Below the pieces are notes generated by a model, which did no database searches, was not told where the DNA came from, and worked only from the letters and a program-made list of their open reading frames with translations. Positions 20,652-46,866 of a DNA stretch of 64,000 nucleotides are shown here, one piece after another. The translations under genes and the position numbers were made by a program. The stretch comes from Lepidodermella squamata (taxonomy: Eukaryota; Animalia; Gastrotricha), in the NCBI GenBank assembly GCA_047495785.1, contig JBLDXI010000045.1, positions 186,001 to 250,000 of the forward strand. Direction: 5' to 3'. Position 1 is the first letter of the stretch; each line of letters opens with the position of its first letter.

Positions 20652-23600
20652 ATGACTGTTCGTAATTCAGACTCATTTGTTACGCTGGCCCAAGAAGACT
20701 TGGAGCAATTCCTGCAGGATGTTGATTGCTTGGATCTTGTTCGAAGGCTTCGAGAAGATGGTCTCTCTACCTGCATTTCTATTCCATCCGGTGAAACTTT
20801 TACCACGATATGTGAAAAGATGCGGCAAGTTGCGTTCAGTGCGGCCGTGCGTGATCGGATTATGAAGCATTTGACGGAGAAGGTTGAAGCTGTGATTATG
20901 ACGAATCGCATGTCTCTAGCTCTCGCGTGGCTTGGCGTTCTCATCGACGAGGCTCGCACAACGGAGAATCTCCAACGGTTTGTTGATGAGCGACGGCCTA
21001 AATTTCAAGGAATATTTTGTTTCTATATTAGAAAGGCTCTATTGGACGATTTCTTGAAGCAATACTTTGAGCACGCTGACAAGCTAAAAGACGAAACGAG
21101 AGTAATTTACAGCAATAATTGCAAATGGTCTAGCTTTAATCCGCCCGTTTATTTAGGATGACAGCGAAACAGCAGTGCTAGCCACGGCTCTGAAGATGTC
21201 AGCAGATGATGTCCCAAACGCAACAGCTGCTTTATCTTTTTTTCCTCAAATTCGTGACCTTTATCGTGACTGCCCTGATAAAGATCCATCGATCCAAGCC
21301 GATTACAATGTCGATGAATCTGTGTGGATTCAACAGTTGTTAACGTGTGGCAAGAATAATGGTGTTGATTTATATCCTTGGGCTGATGCTATGGAGATGT
21401 CGGCTGCTCAGATAAAGCAACTGATACTTCAGAAGCAAGTTGCTCTCATGAAGGAGTAAGTTATTACAGTGTTGCGAGAGTTGCTTGATGGACTAATTTT
21501 TAATTCTAGATGTAAAGTAAGCGTGGATCCGCCGAGGGCACCCAGCACGGAATTACCATCAGTCCCCGCCTCGTTTTACAGCACTAACCACTTGATGCCA
21601 GGCGTCAAACAGCCTACTGATCTACCAGTCGCCCAAGTTTTCAAAGGTGACCAAGTCTACTTGCCCGATCAACGTGGAGCTAACCACCCTTGGAAATTGT
21701 GGACGGTGATGCAGGTGAACAGAAATAAATTGTCATTGTTCGACCCGAACAAACCAGCGATGAAAATGGATTCGACGATAGAAGCCGTCGCGTCCTTCAA
21801 AAATGCGGCTGAAGAGGGAATTTGGTTTCCCGTTGGAACCCTTGTAGTTGGTTCGTTCGCTGCATATTAATGAATGACCCTGAACGAAATCATGTTTTGT
21901 TATGTTGATAGCATGGTGTGATAATGGCCAGAATACTACACCATTCGGTTTTGCTGACAATTATTATCAAGGAATAGTGTTGGAAAGTCCATGCGCATGG
22001 AACCGTTTCCGATACTTGGTGTATTTCGAAAAAGGCGAGCCACCAGCCTACGTTCGGCCTGACTTCGTTTGTCGTAGATTGAAGCAATGTTTGTTGTTTC
22101 TGCATTTTATGGTCATTTTTCTTATTTTGCTTTATTTAGTTGAAAATAACGTCGACCAGCTTACCGAGCTGTACGATCCAAAAGGCGAATTGCAAGAATT
22201 TTTCCAGCTTTTACCTCGCCGTCCATTTATCATGGCGGATGTTGGCCAAGCCTTGTCTTGTAGTTGCTTCAGCGGAATGTGCACAGTTACCGTCGAAGAA
22301 ATCGACTGCAGTCTTTTCAGGATTCAATACCAGCATCCGAAAGTTCTGCCTCCCGAATGGATATTTCGAGCTAGCAAACGATTCGAATTGATGGCTCATT
22401 TCTTAGTTAGTTCAAGTCAATTTTTGTGAAAACTAATGTAACTGTATGCGAAATATAGGTAACTGATCGGCAAGAAAACGGCAGTTTAGCCGAACCATCT
22501 CGTCGCCCACACCGTTTCAACTCATCAGCCACTGTTGAAGTCGCTAACTGGGAAGATATCGGCCCTGTTGTTGGCCCAGCCGAAGACAAGAAATTGTTGT
22601 CGAACGACGACACTTTTTCTCGAACTCGAGATATTAACAAGAAGCATAAACCGGTCGCAAGGAAGTCGACTATATCCGGCCTTGTCAACCACGGCAGGCG
22701 TAGAAAGCGAGCGAAATCACCCCCAGCAGTTCGATCGGCTGAAGAATTACAGGGTGTCTTGGTTAACGAAGAAGTCTCCAGTCGACGTGGTGGACGCCCG
22801 GAAGCTAGAGCTGCCTTGTAAAATTTTTTGGCGATTTGTTACCTACCATGACTATTTTTTTGTATTTTGTCAGTGTTCAGCATATTTGCTCGGATAAATG
22901 CGTTGCCGATGAAGCAAGTTTCTTCGCGAATCCTGATCCTTTGCGAAACCGGAATCCGTTGACTATCCCGTTTTTATGCGGGTGGACGCGTCTTCCATCT
23001 CCGAGCTCTAACCAATCGATCGTTTATTACGCGCCATGTGGAAGAGCTTTGAAAAACGCGGCCGAAGTCGACTGGGCTCTTGTCAATGAATATAAAAGCC
23101 GGTTGACTATTGACATGTTCTCTTTCGAGAGGGATGTGGACATTATCAAGCGATTTGAAACGACTGCGGTATTTATTGTTTTATTTTGAATTGTTCAGGC
23201 TCATTTGATTTATTTCTATTTTAGCCGAAGAAACTGGTCAGCGATATGAGTAATGGCGAGGAGAAGCACCAACCACTGCTTATGGTTAACAAGTTTTCTG
23301 AAGAAGTTCTCGACGGATTCCAGTACTCAAATAAGTGTGATTTATCGAATAACATCCCTCCTGATGCGTTTGAGACCGATTTTCTGGTCGGTTGCGACTG
23401 CACGGACGGGTGCCGCGATCCAACCAAATGTTTTTGCCGCCGCTTGACTGCAACATCTGCCGCCAAGCCGGACGGAAATGTTGGTTACGACTTCAAACGG
23501 CTGTTGAAATCCGTTCCCACTGGGTAAAATTTGCCTGCGAAATGTTCAATTTCGATTCTAATTAACTATTTTTTTTTAGAATTTATGAATGCAATTCCAA

Positions 23601-24387
23601 GTGTAAATGCGCTTGCAATCCGTCGAATTGTTTGAACCGCGTCGTTCAAAATGGCATGCGTGTTCGCCTGCAGGTGTTCAAAACAGCCGACAAGGGCTGG
23701 GGCGTGCAAGCCATTGATGACTTGCCGCGTGGCCAGTTCTTATGCACCTATTCAGGCGAGATTTTAACGAGCGACGAGGCTGATAAAGTTGGCCGGCAAA
23801 ATGGCGATGAATACTTGTACGATCTCGACTTCATCGACACTGCTATTCGTGTCAAACAATTTGGAGACATTGATGATGACGCATCAGAGGCATCAGAGTA
23901 TGGGCACTGAATTTGTTCTTATAATTTGGTTATATCGATTTTTTTACTTTAGGGATAGTGGCAATGGTATGGAAGTTGAACATAATGGCACAAATGGCCA
24001 GCCTGCTGCACATCGCGAGGCGTATAGTGCCTCCCTTGTTCGATTATATCACGGTTCGGCTGAAAATTATGCCTATGTAATGGACGCGAAACGTCGCGGA
24101 AATTTGTCGCGATTTTTCAACCACTCCTGTGATCCAAATTTGACGGTTCAAAGCGTTTTTGTCAATACACATGACATGCGCCTGCCTGTTATTGCTTTCT
24201 TCACTTCTCGCCGCATCCGTGCTGGCGAGGAACTTACCTGGGATTACAGCTACGAGCCTGGCAGGTGAATTTTCGGCGGAAAAACTCGTTTTAATTTTTA
24301 GCTAAATTTCTTTGATATTTCAGCGTTCCCGGCCGAATTATTCTCTGCAAATGCGGCTCTTCAATTTGCCGTGGTCGTCTGCTGTAA
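20652..24387 (+). CDS. SETDB1: Histone H3K9 methyltransferase SETDB1/eggless (Tudor, MBD, pre-SET, split SET, post-SET), multi-exon
   Basis: Tudor [29 protein letters not shown]; [25 protein letters not shown]; pre-[13 protein letters not shown]; [52 protein letters not shown]; last exon 24324-24387 [13 protein letters not shown]. Confidence 0.95.
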
Positions 24388-24560
24388 AAAATGACTATCT
24401 AGTGGAACTTTGATCAAATCACTTGCTCAGCACCAATGTGCGTAGTTGTTTTTCCGGTCTCCAAAATTATTGCTCCGGTTTTTAATAAGTTGCATAGTTT
24501 TTAATAGGTATTTTCCTTTTTTTGGGTAGAACTTATAATTTATTGAGATGGAAGAATAAA

Positions 24561-25828
24561 ATGGACGAGGAGGACAACATGCTGCTGTCGCGGTCCTGCG
24601 TTGGACTGTCGAAACTCAGCTGGCTGATGTACGAGTTGTCCAAAACCCATAACCCAAGCAGGTATGTTATTGATGCCATAATAATTTAACCGGGTATGCT
24701 ACCAAAAATTACCAAACCAGTTACCCTCGGGGTTTTCTCCAGTGAATTTTTTTCGGTAAATTCGTGGCTGAAGGATAGAATATTCTCCCGATAGGCTTAA
24801 TTATTGAAAAATAGTTCAATTCGTACAATAAGTTGAAAAAATTGAAGAGTTGTTGCTTAACTTATGGGTCACACTTGATATTCTGTAGGACTTTTGACTG
24901 ATAGTTGAAAAAAATGATTTCGTAGAATTTGAAATTTCGAATTCATTTTTCGAATTTGAAATTGGCTTCCACTGAAAGATATCTTGTGTTATATTTGATT
25001 ATTGGATAATTACTTAAAAAGTTGAGTTCAACGTGCCACTAAAGAAGCCACTTAATGGACACATTTACGTGGCTGCATATTATATTATTAAGCGTCCTTT
25101 CATTCATTAAAAGTTGCGGCTTTATTAATACTTGCCGGACTTCATTTTCACGCATTATTGAGAATTTAAGCTTGAGGTTTTAAAGCAGCTTCTAAATGCC
25201 ATTTTTTTCCTCGTGATTTTGTAGGAAAGCAAATCTGGAAAAATTTATCGCGGAATTTCGGCGAAGTGTCGATGCTACGCGGCGATTTCATCAATTTTCA
25301 GCTGAAGACCGCGATTTGTGCGCGCGAATCGGCATATCGCTGCACAATTTGCCTGATCTATTCGTCAGTTTGTACTGGTTCGACGAGCTAAAACGGCTGT
25401 ACGACGAACGCGACCCAAGCGTTTGTATTTTATATTCCCACGATAACAACGTATCGGCAACGGTCGTATCGCCTGGCTTCGAGTCGCCGGGCGATGAACG
25501 CGAGGAGAACCAGCTGTGGCGGCAATCGCCGTGGCGGATGAGAATAGTCGAGAGCGTCCAAATCGGGACGAGAGCTTTTGAATCAGTCGAGATGGGGCAT
25601 GCGTCAACTCGACGCTCTTACCAACAATCGAGGTCTTTCAAACCGGAAGGTGACAAGGAAAAACAGCGGCCGAGTGGCTCGCAAATATGGAAAAGAGACG
25701 ATAAATTGAGCCGGTTAGCGGCTGTAGTCAAGCTTGAACGACTTTCGCATCGAGAGATCGCGCTGCTAAGCGGCCGATCAAGTTCGGAAGATAGCGGCTC
25801 GTCTGCCAAAAGGTCGAGAATCAGTTGA
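24561..25828 (+). CDS. Gene Y: about 234-aa protein with SETDB1-N-terminal-like segment, AVVKLERL module and basic tail
   Basis: Exon 1 24561-24661, intron GT(24662)..AG(25224), exon 2 in frame with ORF 25316-25828. By manual count 21 of 83 positions are identical, ungapped, to the SETDB1 N-terminal region. Confidence 0.8.
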
Positions 25829-26317
25829 GTCGTATATGACTAGTTTTCAGTTTTATCTAATCGATGGATCTAATCATGTTGTGCTGAATGACAATCTTCG
25901 ATTTGCCATATAATTATGAATTTTTCTTTGGTGCAGAACGTGCAAAATTAGACAACGCTTAATAATTCTCTACGTATTTTCAAGGAGAGCTCGGATTTTT
26001 CCTAGAATTCTTTACATTTATGGCCGATTTTTAGCAATACCAGACATTTTACGTATAAATGATGAAATTAATTCTTTTGAAGTTTTGCAAGTTCTGCAGC
26101 CATTATGACATATTGCTATACATCTGTTTTGGTTTTTTCTTTCATTTCGCGTAATATTCTGTCTTTTTGATCATGTCTCGAGAATTATTGTGTATTCTTA
26201 TTATTTGAAAGCTTACTATCGAGCTGGTTTGTTGGAAAATCATGGTTATAACTGAATATAAATATGAGATGTTTTCTCAATATTTTATCTAGGTTTTCTT
26301 TGTTTTGATTAATCTCC

Positions 26318-26840
26318 ATGGAGTCGTTTTCCGATCTTGTAGTACCTGCGAGTGAGGTGCTCATTGCTGGTGCTGTCGCAGCTGTTGCGGCCGTGGGATT
26401 TTTGAAGCGGAATTCATGGGCGGCGAGGAAGGTGGAGGCTATGGAAGCGCCTATTGTTGAAAGCAGCGATGAAAGCGACTCGGCCAATGAAGATCCAAAG
26501 CTCAAATTAGTACCGTAAGTTGAGTTTCACCTCTGATTTTGGTCCTCAAGTTGCGTAGAAATGATCCTTTTTCATTGGCTTTTTTTGATTGTTTTCGAGC
26601 AGCTCCTTTCCACTTTTTTCAATATTTCTGTTCCAGCGAAAACAGTATGAAAAATGAATGGAAGAAAGGAGCAGAAAAATTGAATTAAATTACTTGAAAA
26701 ATGAAAATGTTTTCTTTCCTGTTGTTTCTAGTGTTGTTCGACTTGAAAAAATCTCTGCTGAAGCCATCGCAGCGATGAAACTCAAGGATGAAGATGAGCC
26801 AAAATTGAAACGCCGACAGCTACTTCGCCGGAAAAACTGA
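26318..26840 (+). CDS. Gene Z: about 101-aa protein with hydrophobic N-terminal segment, PxVxL (PVVRL) motif and basic NLS-like tail
   Basis: Exons 26318-26514 and 26732-26840 join by GTAAGT..TTCTAG in phase 2, giving VLIAGAVAAVAAVGFL...KLVPVVRLEKIS...PKLKRRQLLRRKN. Confidence 0.7.
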
Positions 26841-27150
26841 AATGGAAAAAATCCTAACTTGAAAGGTTTACGAATATGCAATAAGAGAAATGTTACCTTC
26901 TTTCATGCGTTTTTGTCTCTTACTGTTGCATCGTCTTGAATCTCGATTTCGAATGGTTCTGCGTTTTTAATGAGCCATATAATTAACTATAGCATTTTTA
27001 TACTTTTGGTTCATGGATCGTGTTTTTGTTTCCTAAATTTGCTGCCTTATCTTGCTCGTATGTTAGTATTGCTCAGACTTTTGATAAATACGCACCAATT
27101 TGATGAAAGGACATAAATTTTTATGTTTTAGTAATTTTTATATTAAAAAA

Positions 27151-28167
27151 ATGTCAGACCTAATCAATGCCACTCCTACGAGTATTATCTACTCATCGGC
27201 AACAGTTGCAGCAATCGCCGCGCTGTATTATGCCTATCATCGATATCGCGGCGGGAACATCTGCCCACCCGATCGTTTAGACGGCCGCGTTGTCGTCCTA
27301 ACCGGCGCGACTTCCGGCATTGGCAAAGCCGCGGCTGAAGAACTGGTCAAACGAGGCGCAGTTGTCGTGCTAGCCTGCCGAAACCTCGCTGCGGCTAATA
27401 AGTTGGCCCTTGACATTACAAGCGAGGCTCTCAAGAAAAACCAGCCGGGCCGCGCGACAGCTATGCTGCTAGATTTATCATCAATGGACTCGGTTCACAA
27501 ATTTGTCGAAATTTTGAAGCAGGATTTTTCGAAAATCGATGTACTAATTAACAACGCTGCTGTCTGGGGCACATCGGAACGAGTAATGACAAAAGACGGG
27601 CATGAAGAGCATTTACAGGTCAATCACCTAGCTCCGTTAGCTCTAACTATTCTAGCCCTACCTTTGATGAAAAAATCCGAGGATGCCCGTATAGTTTTCG
27701 TTTCTTCAGATTTGTATAAACGAGGTCGGTTAGATTTCGACAATCTCGATTCGGAAAAATCTTACGAGCCGATGCAGACTTACTCAAACGCGAAATTGAT
27801 GCAAGTAATGTGTGCGCAAGAATTATCGAGACGCCTTAAAGCCAGCTCGAGTTACTCAAATGTCAGCGTTTTCACAGTCAGACCCGGCGTCGTGAATACT
27901 GGGCTATTTCGAAATGCATTCCGCAACCCTGTTGCTAAATTTTTCGGCAGCATTGCTACGTTTTTAATCCTGAAAACGCCTCACCAAGGCGCTCAGCCAA
28001 TTCTCTACTGCACAGCTGTGAAGAAACTGCGCGGTGAAACTGGAAAATTCTACGGAAATTGCCTGGAAGAACCGTTGAAGACTGAAATTTCGCGCGACGC
28101 TACAGCGGCGAAGAAAATCTGGGACGTCAGTATGAAACGAGTCGGTCTATCGGACCACCAGATTTAA
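27151..28167 (+). CDS. Short-chain dehydrogenase/reductase, retinol dehydrogenase 11-14-like, intronless
   Basis: N-terminal TM anchor, TGATSGIG, LACR, LINNAA, VNHL, catalytic YSNAK. Confidence 0.92.
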   Translation: MSDLINATPTSIIYSSATVAAIAALYYAYHRYRGGNICPPDRLDGRVVVLTGATSGIGKAAAEELVKRGAVVVLACRNLAAANKLALDITSEALKKNQPGRATAMLLDLSSMDSVHKFVEILKQDFSKIDVLINNAAVWGTSERVMTKDGHEEHLQVNHLAPLALTILALPLMKKSEDARIVFVSSDLYKRGRLDFDNLDSEKSYEPMQTYSNAKLMQVMCAQELSRRLKASSSYSNVSVFTVRPGVVNTGLFRNAFRNPVAKFFGSIATFLILKTPHQGAQPILYCTAVKKLRGETGKFYGNCLEEPLKTEISRDATAAKKIWDVSMKRVGLSDHQI

Positions 28168-28277
28168 AACATCGAAAACTAATCTAATTGATTTGATTAC
28201 GTGATAAAACTTTAATTTTGTTCGAATTTCTGTTATTTTTTTAGTTATTTTTCAACCAAATTTTGAAAATTGTGTTA

Positions 28278-31200
28278 ATGACCGTGACGAGTGCCGGCTC
28301 GCTGCTAGCCGAAGCGTCAGCCTGCCGATGGTCCCAGTTGGTTTTCGCGAAGCGTTGGAACGAACTTCGGCAATCGCGGGAGACGTCAGATAGCGAACTT
28401 CTCAACGCGTTCTGGTCTGCAGTTGTGTTGAAGCAACCAACTCACGCCTCGACATCACCCTCCTCGGCTTTCGAAGCCGATCTTTCGTTTCTCGACGCGT
28501 TGGACCTAGAAGTCGATAAAGAACTAGTCGCGTCTTTCGTATGTTTCCTCATCGCCTCGGCTCAATTATCACCCGAGGCTGTTTGGAAGTTTGTATCTGA
28601 CCGGGGTTGTTTGATGCGGCAAGAACACGGCAAGTTGCAGATCGAAACAATTGGTGATATGCTGAAATCTCTAGTCATTTCTTTACTTGCGTTATCGAAC
28701 GATGCGAAATCGATCCATGCGCCGTCGAACGTCGTGCAAAAGGGCGACTATTCTTTGATAGCTAAATTTAAACTTCTCCTAGTCATAAAAGCTGAGATGA
28801 TTACATCGATTTGCGACTTTATGGCAACGCATTTGGATTTCAATAACCAACTGACGTGTTTCAGGCTGTCCAGGTGGCTTGATATTATATCTATTTTCGA
28901 GCGGAGTGGCCCGTTGAAGGCTTATTGCCAGTTTGCTACACCGAAATCGAATAGCATTATCGACAGTTGGAAACGGCTGCAACAACTTTCTCTTTCAATG
29001 GCTGCGTTGGAACGATCGGCAATTGCAATTAAGGTAATACATCTATTATTTCGCATTGAAATTGTAGAATTCAACAGCCAAAAACCGTCAACACTTAGAT
29101 GCAAATTAGCGTATTAATAAAATACAGACGACAAATTTCGTTATTTAAAATATTGAATGAAATGGTTAACTTAGGAAGTACTTGGCAATAATTATCATTG
29201 GCCAATTAGCTAATCCAACTGGCCGCTGGGTAGTATAGCCGACTGAGTGGTGCAAAATTTTCCTGAGTATTTTGCGATTTAGAGGCTGATAGGACTGTCA
29301 TACAGAACTGAGTATTGGTCAAAATGAAGGATCCACGACTCATGGGTAGCATTGAATGGCCACGGGCATCTGAATTTTACATTTCTTTGCCCAGCAATGT
29401 CTTTGATTTGTTTACATCGGAAGAAAATGTTGATGATTTGTGGAGCAAAATGACCCGCGGCCTAAAAGATGAAGATGACCGTTTAACAAGTGAAAAGTGG
29501 GATTTGGCGACATTTTGGACATCGTGAGATTTTGATGCCACTTTCAAGATCAATTAACGAGGAGTCAAACGATATAAACTAGAGGTTGATAGTCATCAGG
29601 GTTGCAGAGAAAATGGGCTTCAAAGTTTTCGAGCGAAAAAATCCTAATTTTGAAAAATGCGCGCTTAAAAATTGACTTATTTTATTGCATCAGTAAGTAT
29701 CCCCACTGCAATTAATTCTGGTGTTATTTTCTAATGCACAGACATTATTTTGGGCAATCTGAGGTGAGGAATCTCGGTAGATTTTCAAAAATTTTGCTGG
29801 GATCAAGCTAGTGTCTCAACGACAACCTGAATCAATAACACTTCTCAAGGCAACTGAAATTTGAAATTTAAAAATCATCAAGAAAAACTGTGTAAAAACA
29901 TCTTGGAATCTTGGAAAGCGTCCTTCTTCAAGTGAACACACTTTTAGCGATTTGCTGGAAAATACAGAAAATGCGCCAAACCCCACTTTTCACTTGTTAG
30001 CGGTCATATGTGCGAATTCGCTGATATTTCATATTTCATACGAATATTAAAAAAATATATATATGCATTTTTTATTAGGAAAATCTGATAATGATGTCGA
30101 ATCGATGGATTTCTCGAAGTCGCATGTCGCCGTTTTCCTTCAACCCGAGTCCATCGAAAAGCGCCTCAACCCCTATTTACCCGAACGGCGAACTTGTTTC
30201 CGCAAACGAACCCGATTTCTGTTCGCTATTCTGCGGCGCTGTCGACTATTTGTACGCCCTTGAATTCGGCTCAAATATCAACCGGTTCTCATCGTCTGAA
30301 TTTATGATACCCCTACTGAGATCGCTTTCTCTATCGATGACCCTATTCGTGCCGTCGTCGAATATCGAAAGCGCGATAACTCAAGCGCTAACCTCGCGAT
30401 ACGTGCCACTTTTGAATCACGTGGCAAGCGCAATGAATATTCCCAACTCAAGCCTGTTCGACCTCATCGACCACGCAGCGAAAAACTCGATAAATCAACC
30501 TCAAATGACCGCAAGTCAAATGATACCGAAATTCGGCTCGAGCAATTTCATCGACAATCGGCCGAGTTATCTCATGCGAATTTTCCAGTCCTGCCGATTG
30601 AGTTGCCTAGCAAAAAGCCTGAATGTTACATCGCACACCGGGCAATTTGTCGCTGAGCTGATAACAAACGCCGGGCGAGATATGTCGAAGGTTGAATTTG
30701 AGGAGTATGTAAATCGAGATTTGTTGAAAAACCTTCACATCGCGCCGTTTTTAAATCGGACTGAAATAATTCGACTTCAGCTTGTTTTAGGAGAGCGAGC
30801 TTCGAAGGAAGAAAATCATCTAGCGCTCGGCCTTCTAGCCGCTGTTGATTTATTCAAGTGTTTTCTGTTGACTGGTCCAGGTATCGGCGACCGGCCAGGC
30901 GAGGTGTTGAAATCTGAAGGCGCGGTTGGGTCTTTCCTGGAAAATATCATTAATAAACGAATTAAAAATTTTGCGAATTTGATCCTGAATACCGACGATG
31001 ACGATGGGTGTGATCACCATCAGGACGATAACGACGGAAATCTGCCGGATTTAGACACTTTCATGTCGACCCTACCAGATTCACTGGCTGAATCTGTTGG
31101 AATAGGCCAGGAGACAGCATCTCGTCTGTTATTTCTACTCGGAAAAACTGATCAAACCAGGCAAACTGGGGTTGTTAGGCGATTGGTGTTAGCGAACCCG

Positions 31201-33207
31201 ACCCTGGCGTTTATTCTATGGCTTCTTGTCGATGAAAAGCTACGTCGCCGTTTGATTGTTTCGGCGAAGAAATCGAGGGGCGACTCGCCGGCGCCGAAGC
31301 GGAGAAAAAGCGGCGATTTGAGTAATGCGCCTGAAATTCTAACAGCGATTAGCGAGGCGATAAAAAGCAATATTAATACGTTGAAGGCGCCGTTTAATGG
31401 CGTCTACTCACTACTTGTAACGCTTTCGTGCCAAGTTCGAAGTCTAGCTGTGATTAGTCGGCTCAATAAGACGACGGCGGTGGATCCAGTGATGGTTGCG
31501 TTGAAGCAGCCGAGTCTGCTAAACCATTACTGTGTGATGCGGGAAGCGGCGTTGGCGGATGGAAGTTTCAAAAGCGGCGAGGCAACTGCGCAATCTCTCG
31601 GCGCTCTCTTTCAGCGCGTCTTGATTTCAGGTAAGAATTTTTATTAAGGAGGCGGAGATTTATTCTAAATTTGATATAATTCATGGCTATACTTATTATA
31701 CCATCATACAACGGACAATTACGGATCACTTAATCGCTTGTAATTCTGAGGAAGATTTGCCTGGGCGTATCTTTCAAAAAATTTCTGATTTCATTCGGAA
31801 CATAACATTATTTAAAAAAAATGACATGATTAATTAGTGAAAAATTATTGAAATAATCAAAGAAAATTGTCCCTAAACACACCCTAAAAAAGTTTTGGGT
31901 TCTAGCACTAAATTTGAGACTCTATCACTAGATTTCCCTAAAAAATGGTTTTTCGAGTAACACTTATTTTATTTTTTTTGCGATTCTGCCTAACCGATAG
32001 ATTTTTATATTAAGCGTATTTTGCGCTATGAGCGGACAGCTTAAGATTTATACTTCAGCCAACGGAGGCGATATCGATTCCATGTATCGATTTTACAAAT
32101 CAGTGATTTTTTCGACATCAGCAGTCACGTAAGCCGACGAAAAATACTAGTTGGCTAGTATAATTAATCCTGGGGTCATTCTCCTCTTCTTCTTCTCTTC
32201 ATCGATATCAATGAAGAACAGGAAATCGCAAAACAAATCAGAAAATTTGGTGCTGGAACCTCAATTTAGACCAAGCGCAAATATTTAGACCTATTTTTGA
32301 AATTGGGACATTTTTCTGGGTATTTTCTCTCAATGTCCAGCGTTTTGGGACATTTCCTAAGAACGATTTTTCTATTTTTGCAATTTTGGCATCCAGGTGT
32401 TTACGATCCACAATTACCTATTTGATAAATAAGCGGCTCTCTCCATAAGTCCCAATTCTCACGTGAAATCGACTGTTGAGAAAAATCTCGCCGATACAAT
32501 GGCTTTTTATTTTATGGTGGATTCTGACCGAATTTTATGCTTTTTTAGGTTCCGCCAGTAACACCACCAGTCCGACCCAGGTGCCAAATATGAATTTCGG
32601 CTCAACGGTCGACACATCGGAAGGTTATCGCAACTTTCTCGCCTTCGCCCTGCCACTGATAGCCGGTCTGGACGCCGAAACCCTGCGAATCTTATTCCGG
32701 AAATGGCTGGCTAGCAACGGAATTCTAGCGACGTGCCTTCTCAGCAATAACGGCCAGCTGTCGTTTATTGTCGCCGCTCAGGTGTGGAATTTCACTTTTT
32801 TCCTGATTCTCATGACCGTCACGTCGTCGGGCCTACCTGTCGATGAAGTCAAGCAAACGGTGGCGCGATTCTTCACCGCGTGGCAAACCGGCAAGGAACG
32901 CTTCAGATTTGTTGCTGTCGAAATGTTCTTCGCCGAGTTGATGTTTTTCGCTAATATCAACACGTGCCGGCTGGTTGCGTCGTCCCTGCCTACGGATTTC
33001 ATCCTCAGTTTCGTAACATCGTCCGGCCCAACGACGAAAAGCGCGCCGTCGGCGCCATTATCAGCCTCGACAGGCCCGGCGAATCGGTTGTTGCAACTCA
33101 AGCGTCGAGTTATTGGGCGGATTTTCGCTCTCGACGACAATAATCGCTTCGATGAGGACTTTTGTATTCGCGCCGTGTGTAGTCTTTCCCCGTTTGAAAG
33201 TTTGTAG
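28278..33207 (+). CDS. MED24: Probable Mediator subunit MED24, divergent, multi-exon
   Basis: N-terminal SLLAEASACRWSQLVFA and VASFVCFLIASAQLSPEAV resemble the MED24 start as I recall it (A-W-x-E-R-W-S; L-S-Y-L-x-Y-A-I-S-S-Q). Long helical ORFs 28263-29117, 30091-31647 and 32476-33207 have splice sites at their borders; basic patch PKRRK. Confidence 0.55.
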
Positions 33208-44784: not shown

Positions 44785-46866
44785 TTAGGAATCAGGTGTT
44801 GATGATTGAAGTCTTCTTTTCAGCTCGTTTCTGGCATGAGTAATAGTTGCAATGCAAGTCGTGGAGAGGCCGTATATCAGTAGACCTGTAGACATTATTG
44901 GAAGCCGGATGTTTAAATTGTCATTCGGCGATAATGCCACCGCAACAGCAACAACTGCAACGAATGCACTTCCATTTATTGATAAAATCAAAGTCCTGTT
45001 GTTCTCCGGCAACCAGGAGCCTGTGTTCTTAGATGCTCGCCAAGTGTCGATGCAAAGGAACGTTGTTATGGTTAGGATTAGGATGTGAAATGACAAAATT
45101 GCCGCGACCCAATAGCTCAGATAAGTAGAATCGCAATGGTTTTGGTATACGAAGGAATCAGGGTTCAATCTTGTATAAACGAATTTCTCACTGAAAGGAT
45201 CCACCACACTAAGCCAAGGAGCGATTATGGCAGCGTCGAGCAGTAGCAGGGAGGCAACACAAGTCAGAAGAAAGCAGAAGTCGACCTTGAAATCAGTGTC
45301 ATCTATAGCTCCCGAGTCGACAGAGACTTCGTCGTATTCCTGAAGGCCCTGCCGAACAGTTTTCATCAAATTTCTCCACGTCAAACGCCGGATTTTCTGT
45401 TGATGCAAGCGGATTTTGATCGTAACTGCGCGTGAGAAAATCACACCAGTTATGATAGAAACTCCAGCGAAGGAACCGAGGATCCTTGTGTAACAGGCAA
45501 GCGTGCTCACTTGATTCCTGGTTGTGGTTGCGAACAGAACTGCAGCTCCATTGCAGACAATGGCTCCTCCAGATAAAGCGACGTTGCCGAGTTTTATGGC
45601 CCATGTATATTCCTTGCAGACAGGCTTGAGCACAGAGATTAATGCAAGAGCTGCCTCTACTACAGAGAAGATTATAGTGAACCATCTGAAAGGTTGAAAT
45701 TGTTCGTTTGGTGTCACGACCAGTATGAGGTTTGGTTGATCGGACGGCAGGGTTCCCAGTGCGGATTCATACCAACGCATCGATATGAGATTTGCGATTG
45801 AGTAAGCTGAGTCGTTTCCCTGGAGACTAATCTGGTCGAGCCCAGTTATTAAATGAGTCGGGCTGAAGCTCCCTTCAATAAACTGAGCAACCATTGCAGC
45901 CTTGTTCATCTCGTCCACGAAAGCTCCACCATTAGGTGAAGTCCAATGGTAGATTTGAGCTATAGCGTTTTGCATCGCCTTGTAACAGGCAATCCTTCCA
46001 TCGCCTCTTGGAAATTCCTCCTCTAGCTTCTGAGGATCCTCTCTAGCTGATGAATCCAAGTTGCTAAGATCATTATCGGAAACTCTGAGCCAGATTGCCG
46101 ATGCGATTTGTTCGTTAAGGATTCTAGCGGAACAATCACCCTGTTTGATGATTTCGGATAAGGGTGAGAGGGGTTCGAATGTCGTGACCAGAAACATGAA
46201 TCTACTGCCACGAATTCCCGAATGGAAAGCCTGGCATAAGAAGCGCTCAATCAAAGCCTGTTGGCTGATCTCTATAACGAAAAGTCTCGCGTCAACAGAC
46301 AGCAAGTTTGACATCATATTGTACGACGGGATGTTTGATGTGACAGCTTCGAACGCTAGGATGCTTACATTGCTTTGTTGAAAAAGGGTTTGAAGCATTA
46401 TCGCTCGTAATAGGTTTCCTTGATCCTCGAAGTTGGTAACAATTGCAACTTTCATCCATTTGGCGATATCTTTGACAAATGCTACCTTCGAAATTAGCAG
46501 CGACCTGTAATCATCTCGTAAGATCGGGAATGTCGAGTAAGAAAGTGAGTGTGCTAGTGTCTTGACAGCGCGGGGCAGTGTTCCGACGACAATTTTCGGC
46601 GATGTTGTTGCTTCCGAGATTTGTAGGAGACGGCGGACGATATTTTCCGGTCTTTCGTCAGCGTAAATAAGATTCACTGTGTAGTCCCCCGATTGCCAAT
46701 CGATGGACTCTACTGCTTCCTGCATCGCTGCTCTGCACGATATTCCAGAAAGAGATTCACTGTCGTATAAACCAAGCAGGGTTACATTGCTGGGGATGAT
46801 TTCCAGCGATGCTCCCCACGCTAGGTGCAAGATGAAGACTTGCAGGATAAAACTGAACAAAAACAT
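44785..46866 (-). CDS. Class C GPCR, GABA-B-receptor-like orphan, intronless
   Basis: Signal peptide, periplasmic-binding-like ectodomain (DARLFVI..FLCQAFHSGIRGSRFMFL), no cysteine-rich linker, 7 TM segments with GABA-B-like CYTRI..GVSIITGVIFSR, PWLSVVDP, HCDSTYLSYW and ENNR. Confidence 0.8.
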   Translation of the reverse strand: MFLFSFILQVFILHLAWGASLEIIPSNVTLLGLYDSESLSGISCRAAMQEAVESIDWQSGDYTVNLIYADERPENIVRRLLQISEATTSPKIVVGTLPRAVKTLAHSLSYSTFPILRDDYRSLLISKVAFVKDIAKWMKVAIVTNFEDQGNLLRAIMLQTLFQQSNVSILAFEAVTSNIPSYNMMSNLLSVDARLFVIEISQQALIERFLCQAFHSGIRGSRFMFLVTTFEPLSPLSEIIKQGDCSARILNEQIASAIWLRVSDNDLSNLDSSAREDPQKLEEEFPRGDGRIACYKAMQNAIAQIYHWTSPNGGAFVDEMNKAAMVAQFIEGSFSPTHLITGLDQISLQGNDSAYSIANLISMRWYESALGTLPSDQPNLILVVTPNEQFQPFRWFTIIFSVVEAALALISVLKPVCKEYTWAIKLGNVALSGGAIVCNGAAVLFATTTRNQVSTLACYTRILGSFAGVSIITGVIFSRAVTIKIRLHQQKIRRLTWRNLMKTVRQGLQEYDEVSVDSGAIDDTDFKVDFCFLLTCVASLLLLDAAIIAPWLSVVDPFSEKFVYTRLNPDSFVYQNHCDSTYLSYWVAAILSFHILILTITTFLCIDTWRASKNTGSWLPENNRTLILSINGSAFVAVVAVAVALSPNDNLNIRLPIMSTGLLIYGLSTTCIATITHARNELKRRLQSSTPDS

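Follow-up and report, generated by a model that had tools for sequence, protein, structure and literature searches.

A candidate two-exon small gene that may be a motif-only derivative of its upstream neighbour

MicroProteins keep only the interaction module of a larger protein. Examples include plant LITTLE ZIPPER proteins and animal Id proteins. Among ligands of HP1, the HP1 box of KAP1 (P486-R-V488-S-L490) forms a β-strand between two chromoshadow tails (PMC12126490). Heterochromatin is tethered through HP1 both by LBR, a membrane protein, and by PRR14, which relies on the sequence LAVVL (PMC9839372). A 2025 study described a 14-position consensus for binding to Drosophila HP1a, the 'HP1a access codes' (PMC12526061). 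In this consensus, basic residues surround the core and a hydrophobic residue occupies position +5; the motifs usually lie in disordered regions (PMC12526061).

Here, we analyse a candidate small gene. The original prediction described its product as a minimal inner-nuclear-membrane HP1 tether for H3K9-methylated chromatin. At slightly below even confidence, we favour a different account. Briefly, the locus would be a fast-evolving, lineage-restricted gene of two exons and a motif-only derivative of its upstream neighbour, here called gene A. Like MicroProteins, the small protein has just an interaction-type motif from a larger paralogue, with partial duplication as the probable route. In contrast to their folded dimerisation domains, the element in common here is a linear motif that spans ~16 residues, and interference with gene A is a proposal.

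The window, which is the whole 64-kb stretch of DNA analysed here, has a GC content of ~43%. It derives from a non-human animal genome considered intron-poor because the PAX gene and the class C GPCR-like ORF are each encoded by a single exon. Ankyrin and FYVE genes are also present. The genes and larger ORFs referred to below are as follows.

20652-24387, + strand: SETDB1-type H3K9 methyltransferase gene, two genes upstream of the small gene
24561-24661 and 25225-25828, + strand: gene A, the upstream neighbour; two exons, 234 aa, an orphan
26318-26840, + strand: the candidate small gene; two exons, 101 aa
27151-28167, + strand: retinol-dehydrogenase-like short-chain dehydrogenase, the downstream neighbour; intronless
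44785-46866, - strand: class C GPCR-like ORF; single exon, 693 codons
50639-52213, - strand: PAX gene; single exon, 524 codons, paired box E = 8e-63

Pfam identifies Tudor_5, Tudor_4, MBD, pre-SET, split SET and post-SET domains in the SETDB1-type gene. The best PDB matches to its SET part are the H3K9 methyltransferases SUV39H2 and EHMT1/2. The original prediction placed the small gene next to this H3K9 writer, which is inexact because the SETDB1-type gene ends at 24387 and gene A intervenes. Spacers of 173, 489 and 310 nt separate the SETDB1-type gene, gene A, the small gene and the dehydrogenase. We note that genes occupy the same (+) strand from 20652 to 33207, with short spacers between the first four. 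A pyrimidine tract and AG also occur 20-33 nt 5' of the start codons of gene A, the small gene and the dehydrogenase. The short spacers and upstream tracts would be consistent with trans-splicing of a spliced leader or with an operon-like cluster. Scans of the 64-kb window for Rfam families and tRNAs gave zero matches, and hence the Rfam scan found no spliced-leader RNA there. For five products encoded in the window, public assemblies held no exact-match record.

A related species was located by means of the dehydrogenase, and is known solely from metagenome contigs (ENA). Its dehydrogenase is 66% identical to that of the window, while every other match is 40% identical or less. The best named matches are invertebrate dehydrogenases, at 39% identity or less. 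Scanning metagenomes with a dehydrogenase alignment revealed no further relative above 38% identity. The relative is represented by four contigs of one species that are ~98.6% mutually identical. On these four contigs the gene order is conserved: SETDB1-type gene, gene A, a 66-codon ORF, dehydrogenase and the next gene. The two gene A proteins are only 40% identical, yet the ORF persists at the same site between the same neighbours. Comparison of the two intergenic regions detected no DNA or translated similarity.

In both species, gene A directly follows the SETDB1-type gene (contig L003 1021-1581 and contig L084 9167-9727 in the relative). It has zero matches in Pfam. Profile searches with it found nothing in the PDB and, among 1.84 billion representative proteins, just the orthologue of the relative and some spurious repeat proteins. 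Conserved blocks (LPDL..LY..DE, RDP.VC and VSP) fall in its N-terminal helices. AlphaFold predicts these helices, followed by a disordered tail (pLDDT <50). With an overall pLDDT of 43.6, the model is too poor for a fold search. Haplotypes of the relative differ at many nucleotides of gene A, mostly silently, with three residue changes in the compared stretch. This excess of nucleotide over residue differences suggests, at the sequence level, that gene A is under constraint. As a separate observation, when contig L001 (54-592) is compared with L003, L084 and L085, gene A shows 24 variants over 536 bp, whereas the 640 bp that follow, coding or non-coding, are nearly invariant. We also considered polymorphism as a test of selection on the relative's small gene. 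Only one variant (D2N) occurs there among the four contigs and flanking non-coding DNA is as invariant, so this approach is uninformative.

The small gene was modelled as two exons, with these features.

26318-26514, + strand: exon 1; ATG at 26318, codons 1-65 plus 2 nt, ending GTA CC before a phase 2 GTAAGT donor
26357-26404, + strand: hydrophobic stretch V14-L29 (VLIAGAVAAVAAVGFL); 16 residues, followed by K30 and R31
26459-26494, + strand: acidic, Ser-rich cluster E48-D59 (ESSDESDSANED), which includes SSDESDS at residues 49-55
26498-26514 and 26732-26756, + strand: motif K61-S74 (KLKLVP/VVRLEKIS), spanning the intron
26515-26731, + strand: intron; 217 nt, GTAAGT...TTTCTAG, phase 2, splitting the codon of Pro66
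26732-26840, + strand: exon 2; last nucleotide of the Pro66 codon, then V67-N101 with the shared motif and basic tail, and a TGA stop at 26838-26840

Exon 2 is preceded by TTGTTTCTAG. The spliced product would have 101 aa and end in the basic tail KLKRRQLLRRKN. Several elements of the original prediction are indeed present: the 16-residue hydrophobic stretch followed by KR, the SSDESDS acidic linker and the basic tail. It had also claimed that PVVRLEKI is assembled through a split Pro codon. In the spliced reading, P66 is encoded by CC|T across the intron and followed by VVRLEKI. However, the unspliced frame also supplies Pro (CCG), after which a TAA inside GTAAGT ends a 66-aa product. For annotation, the consequence is that ORF-based callers would see a two-exon, 101-codon gene only as a 66-codon fragment.

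The acceptor at exon 2 has a polypyrimidine score of 0.86, the best of all candidate acceptors for the donor at 26515. A rival acceptor at 26636 (TTCCAG) would give a different end of 17 residues and remove the motif. Another, at 27131 (TTTTAG), is in frame with the dehydrogenase ORF and lies 20 nt before its ATG. Splicing of exon 1 to 27131 would yield a dehydrogenase with two N-terminal hydrophobic helices; for the equivalent in-frame junction, the relative has only a weak AAG acceptor. The two-exon model for the relative comprises a CT/GTATAC donor in phase 2, a 58-nt intron and a TCTCTAG acceptor, giving ...AAKEL/IVQCRLLTASDIENIQNQVKSK. It was picked by us among several donor and acceptor options.

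Codon usage was scored against the long ORFs of the window, where real genes score 0.08-0.52 bits per codon. The spliced coding sequence of the small gene scores +0.25 bits per codon in frame, versus -0.18 and -0.47 in the other frames. This holds for exon 1 (+0.25 in frame versus -0.22 and -0.37) and for exon 2 in the frame that splicing requires (+0.27 versus -0.65 and -0.13). Of the 59 small ORFs that lie outside known genes, the one of exon 1 has the third-best codon usage. The relative's exons also favour the predicted frames, with +0.47 versus -0.24 and -0.74 for exon 1 and +0.29 versus -0.18 and -0.39 for exon 2; such scores, over 23-66 codons, are noisy and the last exon of the relative's gene A itself scores negative. 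A gene on the minus strand was considered and rejected: the antisense ORF at 26185-26505 scores lower in codon usage. Taken by themselves, the listed sequence features are near chance level. For example, shuffles of the small protein contain PxVxL in 5% of cases and the expanded HP1 consensus in 13.5%. What lifts the small gene above chance is in-frame codon usage and a motif in exon 2 that is common to the gene A tail. Hence, the two-exon gene proposed originally is plausible, with codon usage in the predicted frames and a counterpart between the same neighbours in the relative. We consider it probably real, and infer that it is expressed and spliced as modelled.

The motif provides the link to gene A. 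Its copy in the gene A tail is located as follows.

25706-25747, + strand: gene A tail motif LSRLAAVVKLERLS, paralogue of the exon 2 motif

The common part has the pattern hydrophobic-V-basic-hydrophobic-x-basic-hydrophobic-Ser, then Ile four residues later. Ser or Thr follows a basic residue in all four copies. At the small gene junction of the window (...KLVP/VVRLEKISAEAIAAM), a phase-2 GTAAGT intron lies inside a Pro codon that is preceded by Val. The end of the relative's gene A (...CMVP/LVKIKRLSVGEIKKY...) likewise has a phase-2 GTAAGT intron inside a Pro codon. The gene A of the window has lost this last intron and has no phase-2 donor near its end. We aligned exon starts without gaps, anchored at the junction, over 16 residues. 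Exon 2 of the window and the last exon of the relative's gene A reach a BLOSUM62 score of 23, a value attained by 1 of 42,568 real 16-mers (p ~2e-5) and 3 of 20,000 shuffles. With the gene A tail of the window itself (AVVKLERLSHREIALL), the score is 32 and none of the 42,568 background 16-mers reaches it. The relative's modelled exon 2 matches the gene A exon with p ~0.001-0.002, and exon 2 of the window with p ~0.01. Other approaches gave weaker signals. Unanchored local alignment of the small protein with gene A has p ~0.015 by shuffling, and in tblastn over the whole window the match between exon 2 and the gene A tail has E 0.3-2, ranking second to third.

Since the motif is common to the gene A tail, PVVRL is not a random pentamer. 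We hold, with fairly good confidence, that the conserved element of the small gene is a motif inherited from gene A. The common motif and the same phase-2 intron inside a Pro codon point to a partial tandem duplication of the gene A 3' end, which would predate the split of the two species, as the source of exon 2. The VP/GTAAGT end of exon 1 would probably have the same source. What was retained would be a short linear motif at an exon start, common to the gene A tail. Most likely, the small protein would present the peptide of gene A to the partner of the gene A tail, as a competitor or an adaptor. Over their length, the small proteins of the two species are not significantly similar (global p ~0.1, local p ~0.29). 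The relative's 66-codon ORF has an acidic cluster, EEEEISDDED, ~10 residues before the exon end, comparable to that of the window.

The partner, we infer from the motif, may be HP1. For comparison with known ligands, we tested a core pentamer of hydrophobic(-2)-x-[VI](0)-x-[LIVGM](+2), with flanks from -7 to +6 and [KRLN] at +4. The small-protein core PVVRL, at residues 66-70, fits the PxVxL pentamer. Three sequences match all 14 positions of the consensus, which is that of Drosophila HP1a: the small protein of the window (KLKLVPVVRLEKIS), gene A of the window (LSRLAAVVKLERLS) and gene A of the relative (AFCMVPLVKIKRLS). The relative's small-protein copy (EAAKELIVQCRLLT; modelled core LIVQC) lacks PxVxL and breaks the consensus, with E at -3 and C at +2. 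Hence, the HP1-type motif is kept between gene A orthologues and not between small-protein counterparts. Given that only one of the four motif copies fails to fit, the HP1 chromoshadow-domain dimer is the leading candidate partner; the consensus is permissive, with 0.6-1.3 chance matches per 1000 residues. Like the HP1 ligands of KAP1, PRR14 and Drosophila, the window copy and both gene A orthologues have an alternating hydrophobic core with a central Val. They also share basic residues at +1 and +4 and a hydrophobic residue at +5. The tail with the motif may be disordered: that of gene A is predicted to be so, and residues 41-65 of the small protein, at the end of exon 1, are predicted coil by AlphaFold. 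Unlike the known ligands, the host proteins here are orphans, with no relationship to HP1 partners known so far. On these sequence grounds, HP1 binding is possible and somewhat doubtful.

The hydrophobic stretch distinguishes the window's copy. For V14-L29, the Kyte-Doolittle 19-mer mean is 2.09 compared with a usual cut-off of 1.6, the core being 16 residues and Ala/Gly-rich. The summed insertion free energy of the core is estimated at ~-1.1 kcal/mol. Flanking charges are -3 on the N-terminal side and +2 over 15 residues, starting with KR, on the C-terminal side, which gives a positive-inside asymmetry. AlphaFold places residues 11-40 of exon 1 in a helix (pLDDT ~85 over 11-30). The segment is more hydrophobic than the anchor of the neighbouring dehydrogenase, and could act as an N-terminal signal-anchor with the predicted tail cytosolic or nucleoplasmic. 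However, the relative's counterpart has no such segment (best 19-mer mean 0.41), so it is not conserved. Of the membrane anchor claimed originally, the hydropathy, charges and predicted helix therefore stand for the window and not for the relative; in the window's species, the chances of a membrane anchor are evenly balanced. In the account we favour, the helix may insert in a membrane as a species-specific addition and would not define the protein.

The N-terminus of the small protein (M-x-SDL...GAVAAVAAV, 26318-26404) resembles that of the dehydrogenase (MSDL...ATVAAIAAL, 27151-27230). Dehydrogenases of the RDH11/12/13/14 type and the small protein both have an acidic or neutral N-terminus, a helix rich in Ala, Val and Ile, and basic residues. 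Unlike these enzymes, the small protein has no dehydrogenase domain after the helix. Against the small protein, the neighbouring dehydrogenase scores 40, joint best among 121 dehydrogenase N-termini. We rejected copying of the exon 1 N-terminus from the dehydrogenase anchor; an unrelated fish dehydrogenase ties the score of 40 and so the resemblance is possibly compositional.

Four other explanations were weighed against a motif-only derivative of gene A. The locus may be non-functional, consisting of chance ORFs and splice sites or decaying relics of a gene A 3'-end duplication in the spacer. Word-based searches with exon 1 and the exon 2 frame found no homologues in 5.8 billion protein clusters, and Pfam matched zero families with both exons and the relative's ORF. 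ORFs of 66 codons are common in the window, those of the two species are not alignable, and the noise in the codon scores applies here too. However, both exons of both species have their best codon scores in the predicted frame, a perfect GTAAGT donor at the ORF end is paired with a strong acceptor in matching phase, and exon 2 keeps the motif. The ORF has also persisted next to a gene diverged to 40% identity. We regard a non-functional locus as unlikely, while taking it seriously. The exons might instead belong to the neighbours, exon 2 as a duplicated alternative terminal exon of gene A or exon 1 as an alternative 5' exon of the dehydrogenase. The phase-2 donor of the relative's gene A (MVP/GTAAGT) matches in phase the acceptor of that species' exon 2 counterpart, and donor 26515 joins acceptor 27131 in frame with the dehydrogenase. 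Against this, the window's gene A lost the intron concerned. The in-frame dehydrogenase junction is a one-in-three chance, lacks a good acceptor in the relative, and would produce an enzyme with two N-terminal anchors. We give this explanation little credence.

The remaining explanations concern the partner and the anchor. An origin from gene A is compatible with a motif that binds SUMO, or with a basophilic kinase site (K/R-x-S) that would regulate binding to a lineage-specific partner. SUMO-interacting motifs have a VVxL-type hydrophobic core near an acidic, Ser-rich cluster. VVRL, VVKL and LVKI fit this core, and the small proteins of both species have an acidic Ser cluster upstream. The Ser or Thr after a basic residue, kept in all four copies, suits a kinase. 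However, the acidic cluster is 10-12 residues from the core rather than adjacent, and the flanks of the gene A motif are basic, not acidic; a SUMO or kinase partner is very unlikely. Turning to the minimal inner-nuclear-membrane tether predicted originally, the helix does have flanking charges that predict a cytosolic or nucleoplasmic tail, the motif agrees with the whole of the expanded Drosophila HP1a consensus, and the conserved cluster is headed by a SETDB1-type gene. The precedent is also genuine, as LBR and PRR14 do tether heterochromatin via HP1 (PMC9839372). What they have in common with the proposed tether is the idea of a peripheral anchor plus an HP1-binding element (PMC9839372). 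Neither resembles the small protein. LBR is a multi-pass, sterol-reductase-type membrane protein with a Tudor and a sterol-reductase domain, compared with one short, non-conserved helix here. PRR14 is large and non-membrane, with lamina-binding and C-terminal domains, and the 101-aa small protein has no sequence similarity to LBR or PRR14. There is no Pfam match on either exon, and at only 101 aa the protein cannot hold the domains of either family. Furthermore, the hydrophobic core is short and Ala/Gly-rich, a PxVxL arises in 5% of shuffles, zero indication of sorting to the inner nuclear membrane was seen, and the SETDB1-type gene is not adjacent. The PxVxL claim thus survives as a full consensus match common to gene A, and fails as a conserved feature, as the relative's copy does not fit; by itself, the motif is at chance frequency. 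Since a hydrophobic segment and a motif that fits the consensus are both missing from the counterpart in the relative, an anchor combined with PxVxL is not a conserved design. A conserved nuclear-envelope tether is accordingly highly improbable, and the tether as originally modelled is equally hard to credit. A compromise would give gene A an HP1-binding tail and let its partial duplicate gain an anchor in one species, creating a membrane-bound HP1 ligand of 101 residues at the nuclear envelope or ER. To this we assign the lowest credence. If true, a minimal heterochromatin tether would here be seen just as it evolves, one that holds or sequesters HP1-bound chromatin or HP1.

Returning to the motif-only derivative of gene A, a real gene would illustrate cleanly how partial tandem duplication can give rise to a taxonomically restricted small protein that keeps only a short linear motif of its parent. 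Gene A would then also deserve attention as a candidate heterochromatin factor whose tail resembles an HP1 box. The claim of a minimal nuclear-envelope tether would be interesting, and is based on features that are not conserved.

Some smaller observations concern the DNA around the small gene. The 12-mer GCCATATAATTA has 2 occurrences in 64 kb, at 25905-25916 and 26974-26985 (+ strand), which are 77 nt past the gene A stop and 134 nt past the small gene stop, respectively. Either a 3'-end signal or a relic of duplication could account for it. Alignment of the 3' flanks as a DNA-level trace of duplication was not significant (p ~0.09) and was set aside. Upstream of gene A, a three-codon ORF at 24548-24559 (+ strand; ATG GAA GAA TAA) ends one base before the gene A start. 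Finally, the reading frame of exon 2 extends 5' into the intron without a stop, up to an ATG at 26658, forming a stand-alone ORF of 60 codons at 26658-26840 (+ strand; MEERSRKIELNYLKNENVFFPVVSSVVRLEKIS...).
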